DNA of 64,000 nucleotides, from positions 293,560 to 357,559 of IMG/VR virus record IMGVR_UViG_3300044701_000569; one strand, 5' to 3'. The position numbers and the translations under genes were made by a program. Under the pieces are notes generated by a model that saw only the letters and a list, made by a program, of their open reading frames with translations, ran no database searches and was not told the origin of the DNA. Below, in pieces: positions 41,621-46,446 of this stretch (position 1 is its first letter; every line of letters begins with the position of its first letter).

Positions 41621-41647
41621 AAAAAGAAAGGCGCCCTAGAGCGCCTT
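41621..41647 (-). terminator. intrinsic terminator ending the tmRNA transcript
   Basis: AAGGCGC-tctagg-GCGCCTT then TCTTTTT. Confidence 0.75.
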
Positions 41648-41999
41648 CCTCACTGTTCTGTTGCCCGGTAAGTGAACCGCGAACCTGCTGTTTCTTAGGC
41701 AGCTAGCGCAAAGTTGTTGTCATTGACAGCAACGTTTACGAATAGTTCAGGAGTAAAGGTTTTTGTGCCGTTTACTTGATTTTGCTTCTTTTACGGAGAT
41801 CGCCTACCGTGTTGCCGTCTCTACTATCTCACCCAATCGATCCTAGTTCAGCCCCATCATAAAAGGACAATTAGCATGACAGTTACAATGACTGTAAATC
41901 CTACTAAAAATCTTACTAGATCGTCTTCCATAACTATCCTTTTATGGTGGAGCTGGCGGGAGTTGCACCCGCGTCTTGAATGCCTTCGCTTTGAAGGGA
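41648..41999 (-). ncRNA. ssrA: circularly permuted (two-piece) tmRNA
   Basis: Acceptor piece ...GCGGGTGCAACTCCCGCCAGCTCCACCA ends at 41945 and precedes the coding piece, which starts GGGGCTG at 41855. G3:U70 pair present. Tag frame ends NDNNFALAA-TAA at 41695. Outer ends approximate. Confidence 0.92.
41857..41931 (-). CDS. putative 24-aa TM peptide inside the tmRNA intervening segment
   Basis: AAGGA SD, ATG, MEDDLVRFLVGFTVIVTVMLIVLL, TGA. Confidence 0.5.
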   Translation of the reverse strand: MEDDLVRFLVGFTVIVTVMLIVLL

Positions 42000-42012
42000 T
42001 TACAACAATTTC

Positions 42013-42216
42013 TTAAACAGGCTGAATGTTACTTGCCTGTTGTCCTTTTGGACCCATTGTGATTTCAAATCTTACACTCTGTCCTTCTTGTAGGCTTTTG
42101 TAGCCACTAGAAGAAATTTGTGAAAAATGAGCAAACACATCTGCGCCGCCATTGTCTGGAGTAATGAAACCAAAACCTTTAGCTTCGTTAAACCATTTTA
42201 CTTTACCTGTTACCAT
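42013..42216 (-). CDS. cspA: cold-shock protein
   Basis: GKVKWFN, KGFGFI (RNP1), VFAHFS (RNP2). Confidence 0.96.
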
Positions 42217-42285: not shown

Positions 42286-42379
42286 TTACTAACTAGTCTC
42301 AATTTATCTTACTAAAATTTTCGTATAGTGCATTATTGCACAGTTTGTAGATTTGTCAACCTACATTCTATTTAGCTGG

Positions 42380-45372: not shown

Positions 45373-45400
45373 AGTATAGCACAAAGTTTGGATTTGTCAA
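45373..45400 (-). promoter_or_regulatory. sigma70-like promoter TTGACA-N16-TATACT
   Basis: Read directly; -35 overlaps the PAAR gene stop. Confidence 0.8.
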
Positions 45401-46446
45401 GAGTAATATAACTTGAGTCCAGACTCGTAGTTACCTTTATACATTGTGGTAACCTTGCCTCTTTGTTTGGATTTATTTCTATCGTAGCTGAGATGAATCC
45501 AAATTGTGTTGCCGTGCTCAAAAATAATTTGATCGTAATCTATGTTATCTCTTATCCACTGCGCTCTCGGCAAGTAGTCACGTGGTGCTAATCCAGGCCA
45601 CTGTATGTCCATAGCCATTCCGTTGCAGTGTTGGCTTCCGCTTGAACCTTGTCTAAATCCACTATTAATTCTAATTCCGGGATATTTTCGGTTTACTGGT
45701 TCTGCTACATTTTCTGCTAGATATTTTAAGTTACCCATTAGATCCTGTATTGAATAGCCCTTTTGTGACTGCAATTGATGTTTGAAAACACAGTTAAGAG
45801 TAAAGTCTTTTACGGTGTAGTTAGTTGAGAGCCTATAATTGTAATCAATACTTGAGGGTAGATTAGATGTATCTACATCTCTACGCTCAGGAGCATCACC
45901 TTGTCTTCCGCTGTTATCCACTGTAGAGGGAGAAGTTGGAGCACCTGGTTGTGTGCTTCTATCGTTAGGCGAACTATATGCACTAAATCTAGGATTTGAT
46001 CCCCCGCCGCTTGTTGGTGCACCGTCTTCGCCGCCTTCATCATCTTCAGCGGCACCAGCACCTTCATTGACAATGGCATTTGAACCTGCTGCTGAATAGG
46101 GATCAGTAGCTACTAATACTCCTTCTACAAGTACAGCACTACCGTTGCTTACTGAAAGGTCTCCAACAAAAACTGTAGACTGAAGTTCAACCACAGTAGT
46201 TGCGCCACAGATTCTATCATCGTCATGCCTGTGTACAGGGTTGCTATAGACAAAAACAGATGGGGCGCCTTCAGCAGTTTTAGGATTACAATGCGGGCTA
46301 GCAGGGCACAAACTATCCGGCTGGGCGGGATCCTCGTGTTCTATTACAGGGATACTATTAACAAATACTGTTTGGGGATTTTCAGCAATTAACTGACCCC
46401 CACTGTGTGTATTGGGATCTCCTTGTACTGCCCACAACTTGCTCAT
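45397..46446 (-). CDS. PAAR spike-tip protein fused to peptidase M15
   Basis: GDPNTHSGG, TVFVNSIPV, PVHRHDD..CGA; G/D/S linker; SGFR..SQH..GMAMD...WIHLS. Confidence 0.88.
   Translation of the reverse strand: MSKLWAVQGDPNTHSGGQLIAENPQTVFVNSIPVIEHEDPAQPDSLCPASPHCNPKTAEGAPSVFVYSNPVHRHDDDRICGATTVVELQSTVFVGDLSVSNGSAVLVEGVLVATDPYSAAGSNAIVNEGAGAAEDDEGGEDGAPTSGGGSNPRFSAYSSPNDRSTQPGAPTSPSTVDNSGRQGDAPERRDVDTSNLPSSIDYNYRLSTNYTVKDFTLNCVFKHQLQSQKGYSIQDLMGNLKYLAENVAEPVNRKYPGIRINSGFRQGSSGSQHCNGMAMDIQWPGLAPRDYLPRAQWIRDNIDYDQIIFEHGNTIWIHLSYDRNKSKQRGKVTTMYKGNYESGLKLYYS

Follow-up and report, generated by a model that had tools for sequence, protein, structure and literature searches.

Phages have long been known to encode tmRNAs, among them the Bxz1 group, phage G, and the mycobacteriophage DS6A, whose molecule consists of the tRNA-like domain only and has been proposed to shut down host trans-translation (PMC4131195). 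Huge phages also carry tmRNA, and some of them carry SmpB as well (PMC7162821). Two-piece tmRNAs of phages are already documented: Buchholz et al. described that of phage Melnitz in 2022, with 53 two-piece molecules among 133 unique phage tmRNAs, mostly aquatic and including 300-kb Caulobacter phages (PMC9004378). Known permuted phage tmRNAs include those of the Methylophilales phage Melnitz, the Pelagibacter phages HTVC008M and Mosig, the Caulobacter phages phiCbK and CcrSC, and Synechococcus myophages (PMC9004378). A 2025 tmRNA database holds 79 phage tmRNAs and is the source of the model that detects the gene reported here, and permuted tmRNA genes whose intervening sequence carries cargo, either a tRNA-Ala gene or a repetitive element, have also been described (PMC11915505).

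The gene reported here lies in the final 64 kb (the window, that is, the whole stretch of DNA analyzed) of a 357,559-bp IMG/VR virus record. The features described below make it probable that this freshwater jumbo phage has a working two-piece tmRNA (ssrA). Like the Melnitz-type genes, it is a complete permuted ssrA, detectable by ARAGORN, in a large lytic-type aquatic phage, and it belongs to an operon headed by an early-type promoter (PMC9004378). As in those phages, no SmpB gene was found when the phage genome was searched. Unlike them, the best subtype model is beta rather than alpha or cyano, the Rfam scan found no riboswitch, the gene is fused to a cold-shock protein (csp) gene, and a long intervening segment with mini-ORFs separates the two pieces; among GenBank phages, blastn found no similar tmRNA and megablast no similar flanking DNA. 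The phage resembles the Bxz1 group, Bacillus phage G, and the huge phages in being large, rich in tRNAs, and equipped with its own ribosome rescue RNA, whereas the tmRNAs of those phages are standard one-piece molecules and some huge phages, unlike this one, encode SmpB.

Identification and anatomy of the permuted tmRNA gene

In the 64 kb, ARAGORN called just one gene, and this was a permuted tmRNA ("tmRNA*"). The Rfam model RF04321 (tmRNA_permuted; gathering score, 47) matched over its full length (positions 1 to 213) with 127.4 bits (E = 1.5e-24). RF01850 (beta_tmRNA) matched the whole gene with 108 bits, above its gathering cut-off of 84. Because the ARAGORN call is joined by Rfam scores above the cut-offs, the match is far beyond chance. 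A first-pass annotation, made from the letters alone, had proposed a phage-encoded, circularly permuted two-piece tmRNA at this locus and had named ARAGORN and the Rfam permuted-tmRNA models among the checks; these two were positive, and the phage context described below agrees with the proposal. Its remark that standard annotation often misses such genes does not apply here, since both programs detect the gene at default settings. The locus had been placed at 41621 to 41999; the gene reaches slightly farther and occupies about 42008..41624 on the minus strand, in the order csp, acceptor piece, intervening segment, coding piece, terminator.

The record is 100% complete according to CheckV, has a GC content of 39%, and contains 27 tRNA genes plus one tmRNA. 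Neighboring genes match phage families, with PHROG matches that include endolysin/PAAR and nuclease families; a PAAR/endolysin-like protein and an SNase-type nuclease lie beside the locus in the window, together with auxiliary metabolic genes for a FAD oxidoreductase, a class II aldolase, and an IMPDH/GMP-reductase-like protein. The syntenic relatives of the locus are IMG/VR viral contigs. The tmRNA gene is thus a phage gene and not part of a bacterial contig. Public runs with sequence of this phage are freshwater, lake, and wetland metagenomes, and 98 to 99% of the phage words are present in at least 3 samples from 3 studies. Protein-atlas neighbors of two adjacent proteins narrow the host no further than Pseudomonadota. 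Two further observations concern the surrounding genome. The 349-aa protein encoded at 45397-46446 (minus strand) of the window has a PAAR motif (PF05488) at its N terminus and a C-terminal part that resembles a PHROG endolysin family. In addition, ARAGORN calls a tRNA with a four-base anticodon (tgat), to which it assigns no identity, at 289168-289239 of the record, within the phage's 24-tRNA cluster, which puts it about 4.3 kb ahead of the window.

Between 42500 and 41400, the minus strand has one promoter-like site, a sigma-70-like promoter at 42332..42359 (TTGACA, 16 nt, TG-extended AATAAT; 11/12 consensus matches), upstream of csp. The csp gene (42013..42216, minus strand) encodes a 67-aa cold-shock-domain protein (PF00313, E = 1.7e-29; phrog_729), and its UAA stop codon, at 42015-42013, ends 5 nt before the acceptor piece, in line with the position directly downstream of a csp gene given in the first-pass annotation. 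No internal promoter for the tmRNA was found within csp. Since no other promoter-like site precedes the terminator, one csp-tmRNA transcript is the parsimonious reading, and the predicted promoter probably drives both genes jointly. The cspA thermoregulator 5′ UTR (RF01766) scored 20.4 bits here, below its gathering cut-off of 78.

The acceptor piece (41945..42008, minus strand) is 64 nt long and comprises the 5′ strands of P2, the T-arm, the 3′ acceptor strand CAGCUCC, the discriminator A, and an encoded CCA. It had been called very short, but its length agrees with the family consensus, which has 63 positions up to the CCA. The acceptor is tRNA-Ala-like, with a 7-bp stem (GGGGCUG/CAGCUCC) that includes G3:U70, followed by ACCA (A73 discriminator, CCA encoded). 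The T-arm has a 5-bp stem (41972-41968 with 41960-41956, GCGGG/CCCGC) and a 7-nt loop, UGCAACU (41967-41961). P2 joins the two pieces through the pairs UGUUG/CAACA and CAUUCAA/UUGGGUG, as seen in both the cofold and the covariance model alignment; the cofold also recovers the acceptor stem and the T-arm. The permuted order of the halves (CCA ending at 41945, upstream of the GGGGCUG 5′ half at 41855), the G3:U70 acceptor stem, the joining helix, and the terminator all appear on the minus strand as first described. The T-arm and the 3′ acceptor strand, the final ∼32 nt of this piece, match sequence in all 5,426 complete Escherichia coli genomes at 90 to 99% identity, so the determinants of charging and delivery look canonical, with the exception of the T-loop. 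There, position 2 is a G, where the family consensus and tRNAs have an almost universal U. The G at this position is conserved across the phage clade, the loop reading UGCAACU in the window and in the relatives L023 and L025, and UGCGACU in the more distant L030.

The coding piece (41652..41855, minus strand; G1 = 41855) begins with GGGGCUG, which is followed by a D-loop-like region and by the 3′ strands of P2, these reaching to about 41812. Next come a small hairpin with a candidate pseudoknot, PK1, then the tag reading frame and a 3′ hairpin. The candidate PK1, at about 41809-41782, consists of CGG/CCG plus GC..UCU/AGA..GC, and a single double compensatory change in it, CU/AG to GA/UC, separates two sequence types among the related loci. 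The 3′ hairpin, at about 41677-41652, has the conserved loop GGCAACAGAAC and is followed by an intrinsic terminator (41624..41651, minus strand) with a 12-bp stem and a U-run.

The tag frame admits two readings, as it contains two in-frame copies of the hexamer GUAAAC with a spacing of 36 nt. In the longer version (41695..41769, minus strand) the resume codon is GGC (Gly; 41769-41767), which follows the upstream GUAAAC, and the frame encodes GTKTFTPELFVNVAVNDNNFALAA and a stop. The second GUAAAC precedes GUU at 41733-41731, from which ARAGORN predicts a 12-aa tag, VAVNDNNFALAA; in L023 and L025, ARAGORN predicts a 24-aa tag, AEMTFTPELFVNVAVNDNNFALAA. We favor GGC 41769 because it lies 14 nt past the candidate PK1, because the consensus resume codon coincides with it in the RF04321 alignment, and because L030, a more distant phage tmRNA, has an equal geometry (GAAGC, 14 nt, GCA). 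The most likely tag predicted from the sequence is therefore GTKTFTPELFVNVAVNDNNFALAA, with some ambiguity left by the two in-frame GUAAAC sites. The tag ends ...NDNNFALAA-UAA, and so in ...FALAA whichever resume codon is used.

The element order, a tag of the form ...N-D-x-x-F-A-x-A-A, and a 3′ hairpin of similar loop sequence just before a terminator are shared with the betaproteobacterial tmRNAs of RF01850. The phage gene differs from them in its intervening segment (89 nt with an ORF, against about 30 nt in the consensus), in about 36 extra nt in or before the tag, and in the T-loop UGCAACU. With the coding piece alone, beta_tmRNA was again the best model of the Rfam clan (46 bits, partial match), so that the best subtype model is betaproteobacterial and not alphaproteobacterial, the group named first in the first-pass annotation. 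Descent from the beta two-piece lineage is likely by this measure, with the subtype call itself to be held loosely, since the model has limited specificity: two standard tmRNA sequences in tandem in a Pantoea genome score 85.8 bits with it. That tandem, on a scaffold of Pantoea sp. BRM17 (L006 7613-8000 / L008), is a standard tmRNA with the 5′ part of a second tmRNA a few dozen bases or less downstream; it also scores 71 bits as "permuted," which calls for caution in assigning subtypes, and it is the type of arrangement from which permuted genes could arise.

When 185,579 species genomes were scanned for a permuted arrangement of this acceptor stem, only three loci emerged, in a Sphingomonadaceae metagenome-assembled genome (MAG), in Pantoea, and in a Gaiellaceae MAG. 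The first is a contig with an alpha-type gene, and the third (L007) has no Rfam match. No sampled genome of the class of Pantoea had beta_tmRNA above the cut-off (0/150), and no bacterial donor was found in these searches.

Conservation among related phages

Related loci were gathered by pattern scans, and all identities are given relative to the window. L002/L024 and L003 are strains of the same phage, with flanks 98.5 to 99.5% identical. L023 and L025 are syntenic and more distant, with flanking genes 70 to 76% identical. The csp gene, acceptor piece, intervening segment, coding piece, and terminator are present in all of these relatives. Compared with L023 and L025, csp is 91% identical, the acceptor piece 97% (L023) and 100% (L025), and the region from G1 to the tag stop 91 to 92%, whereas the intervening segment is at the chance level of 40 to 44%. 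The mature pieces are thus far more conserved than the surrounding phage genes. The changes that do occur in the mature RNA are few and largely compensatory (L023 T-stem, candidate PK1, terminator stems): both acceptor-piece changes in L023 compensate each other, turning the T-stem from GCGGG/CCCGC into CCGGG/CCCGG, and the terminator differs in sequence among the relatives while its pairing is kept. Across 9 permuted tmRNA loci, the acceptor and T-stems covary and G3:U70 is fixed (9/9). Because compensatory changes keep the stems paired, the RNA is under selection, and covariation with a fixed G3:U70 is the signature of a functional RNA.

Two features of these relatives lie outside the mature RNA. 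In L002/L003, csp and the acceptor piece are separated by a 73-nt insertion that the window lacks; it encodes a 22-aa hydrophobic peptide, MKAYQPIVAVLIVIFVLIHVFM (L003 6982-7050, plus strand). On L030, another freshwater phage contig, the permuted tmRNA adjoins genes for a ClpX-like ATPase, ribosomal protein S21, HSP20, and ClpS (L030 1-2908), a neighborhood that looks like a proteostasis and translation cluster.

The conservation pattern bears on what the RNA does. The phage could encode a decoy that binds host SmpB, and perhaps AlaRS and EF-Tu, without tagging and so shuts down host trans-translation. Such a role would suit a phage with no SmpB of its own and an RNA with an unusual G at T-loop position 2 throughout the clade, and DS6A provides a precedent, a similar molecule being inhibitory to tmRNA when expressed (PMC4131195; PMC11915505). 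A decoy, however, would need the tRNA-like domain only, whereas here conservation at 91 to 100%, against 70 to 76% for the flanks, extends to the tag frame, the sequence before the resume codon, the stop, and the 3′ hairpin, and the canonical ALAA end of the tag is kept. We therefore regard a decoy or inhibitor as improbable.

The first-pass annotation had suggested that the phage supplies a rescue system that may resist host RNase toxins, that is, a replacement tmRNA protected by its two-piece form. By general logic, mRNA-cleaving toxins would raise the demand for rescue, which fits an ordinary rescue tmRNA equally well. The two-piece form is, moreover, ordinary in whole bacterial lineages and in many phages (PMC9004378; PMC11915505), neither the window nor the relatives have a toxin, antitoxin, or defense gene linked to the locus, and no feature of the sequence points to nuclease resistance. 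Nothing in the sequence, the context, or the relatives supports the suggestion, and we consider it very improbable. Least probable of all is a passenger without function in the phage, passive or in decay, that stems from the chance capture of a host tmRNA gene or from an attachment site: prophages do frequently carry ssrA fragments (PMC9004378) because ssrA is an integration site, but here both halves are complete and in permuted order, a strong promoter-like site precedes the gene and its own terminator follows, and the conservation of the RNA well above neighboring genes in syntenic relatives, with compensatory changes, largely refutes such a remnant.

The variable intervening segment

The 89-nt intervening segment (41856..41944, minus strand) is closed by pairing of its ends (41944-41931 with 41873-41860), and a UGAU leader (41859-41856) precedes G1; the segment is expected to be removed when both pieces mature. 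It contains a predicted mini-ORF (41857..41931, minus strand) of 24 aa, MEDDLVRFLVGFTVIVTVMLIVLL, with AAAGGA 5 nt upstream of its AUG. The encoded peptide is hydrophobic, its UGA stop ends 1 nt before G1, and it had no match in Pfam or PHROG.

Among strains with ∼99% identical flanks (the window and L002/L003), the intervening segment is wholly replaced. Its length is 89 nt in the window, 135 nt in L002/L003 (L003 7120-7254), 178 nt in L023, and 62 nt in L025; identity between the variants is 32 to 54%, and the interior of the window's segment is unrelated to that of the relatives. The parts that are kept are the closing stem, found in 4/4 variants with compensatory changes in each, and the 4-nt UGAU leader before G1. 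In 3/4 sequence classes, AAAGGA lies within 1 to 3 nt of the CCA and an AUG follows at +13 to +15. The cargo differs in each case: L025 has none, only a plain hairpin; L023 has a 23-aa ORF and then a 44-aa membrane-like ORF that ends at the same UGA; and L002/L003 have a Cys-rich ORF (L003 7131-7337) that is stop-less before G1 and reads into the tmRNA body. Permuted genes with a tRNA-Ala gene or repetitive element as cargo likewise have an intervening sequence that tolerates inserts (PMC11915505). Unlike those, the phage loci have protein-coding cargo, a ribosome-binding site 1 to 3 nt past the CCA, and variation between strains that are otherwise 99% identical.

The Cys-rich ORF represents a real protein family with a core of about 45 aa and the pattern CxC...CxxC, in which M1, C4, C6, R7, D28, C31, and C34 are invariant. 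A profile search found 118 clusters at E ≤ 1e-3 among 1.84 billion representatives, and no copy of the family was found in the genome to which the window belongs. The closest members lie inside the intervening segment of other permuted phage tmRNAs (L030 3001-3192; L031 3001-3159; L034/35, with the ORF at L034 957-1184), which have other acceptor stems and share the leader, the frame, and the lack of a stop before G1. Other close members are directly upstream of alpha-type permuted tmRNAs (L026-L029; L026 3001-3192), and more distant members are ordinary small phage genes. A general role of the family as a dedicated tmRNA partner was rejected, since 6 distant members sampled had no tmRNA or tRNA within 1.5 kb. 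Searches of Pfam, PHROG, and PDB sequences with the Cys-rich ORF gave nothing. When an AlphaFold model built from 53 sequences (pLDDT 83) was compared with PDB and Swiss-Prot, the sole matches were to bacterioferritin-associated ferredoxins; these were not significant (E about 6, TM 0.39 to 0.50), and identification as a Bfd-like [2Fe-2S] protein was not accepted. The modeled likeness to bacterioferritin-associated ferredoxins may serve as a lead.

The mini-ORFs could simply be tolerated cargo at a site that is excised anyway, which is one possibility. Another, which we put forward tentatively and consider rather unlikely, is that the intervening segment is a translated "slot": the tRNA-processing cuts by which both tmRNA pieces mature would also set free a mini-mRNA of 90 to 180 nt on which translation ends at the RNA 3′ end, and the small proteins would be built-in clients of trans-translation, their level coupled to tmRNA activity. 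The mini-mRNA may then have its ribosome-binding site just past the CCA and a cargo that is swapped between strains. Its ORF may either stop 1 nt before the RNase P site, as in the window and L023, or have no stop, as in the Cys-rich cases (L003, L030, L031, L034), so that translation would always end at the mini-mRNA 3′ end. A coupling of this type is known for arfA, whose level depends on tmRNA activity.

Transcription and proposed function

The RNA data consist of assembled contigs of public RNA runs, from libraries in which DNA carry-over is possible. In the lake metatranscriptome X25, contigs of the coding piece of a type-B relative reach word depths of 115 to 245, and a 992-nt contig that takes in csp and the acceptor piece and reaches the first part of the coding piece has a depth of 47; flanking phage genes are absent from the X25 contigs. 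All of these contigs belong to relatives at 90 to 95% identity and not to this phage. With that restriction, and with DNA carry-over possible, they are weakly suggestive of a stable and abundant RNA made from a csp-linked precursor, and the depth difference in the relative (115 to 245 for the coding piece against 47 for the csp-acceptor contig) is no more than a hint of two stable RNAs. In X19, the one RNA run in which this very phage occurs, the tmRNA is not covered by any contig, the depth being only 2 to 5.

In X25 and X26, contigs of relatives or other organisms end at positions corresponding to 41667 and 41947, where they are joined to Illumina adapter. Position 41667 lies in the loop of the 3′ hairpin of the coding piece, and 41947 is 2 nt short of the CCA end. 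These adapter-joined ends hint at discrete RNA ends.

By analogy with established tmRNA biology, processing, charging, tagging, and the benefit to the phage would proceed as follows. The csp-tmRNA precursor would fold with the intervening segment as a stem-loop atop the acceptor stem; host RNase P would cleave before G1 (41855), and host 3′-processing enzymes would trim the RNA to the CCA (41945). The 64-nt acceptor piece and a coding piece of roughly 200 to 230 nt would remain base-paired, and the molecule would be charged with alanine by host AlaRS. Because the phage encodes no SmpB, it would depend on that of the host; compatibility with host SmpB and AlaRS is assumed. Together with EF-Tu, host SmpB would bring the charged complex to ribosomes stalled on broken mRNAs, where translation would resume, most likely at GGC 41769. 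The appended tag, ending in ALAA, would mark the product for ClpXP-type proteolysis, and the ribosome would be freed. During infection, mRNA decay would generate many non-stop complexes. Together with 27 tRNAs and Csp, an RNA chaperone probably made from the same transcript, the gene most likely sustains the supply of ribosomes for the synthesis of phage proteins.

With this locus, the described class of phage two-piece tmRNAs gains a member of beta-like subtype from a freshwater jumbo phage. The conserved T-loop G and the two in-frame resume sites are simple, testable departures from the textbook tmRNA. The more useful lead is the set of loci that are nearly identical except for the intervening segment: the variant series, from an empty hairpin through a hydrophobic mini-ORF and a stop-less Cys-rich ORF to two ORFs, offers a comparison both for the tolerance of the precursor and for the translation of RNA excised during tmRNA maturation. 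More broadly, the 27 tRNAs, the tmRNA, and Csp of this phage support the view that large phages bring a translation maintenance kit with them.
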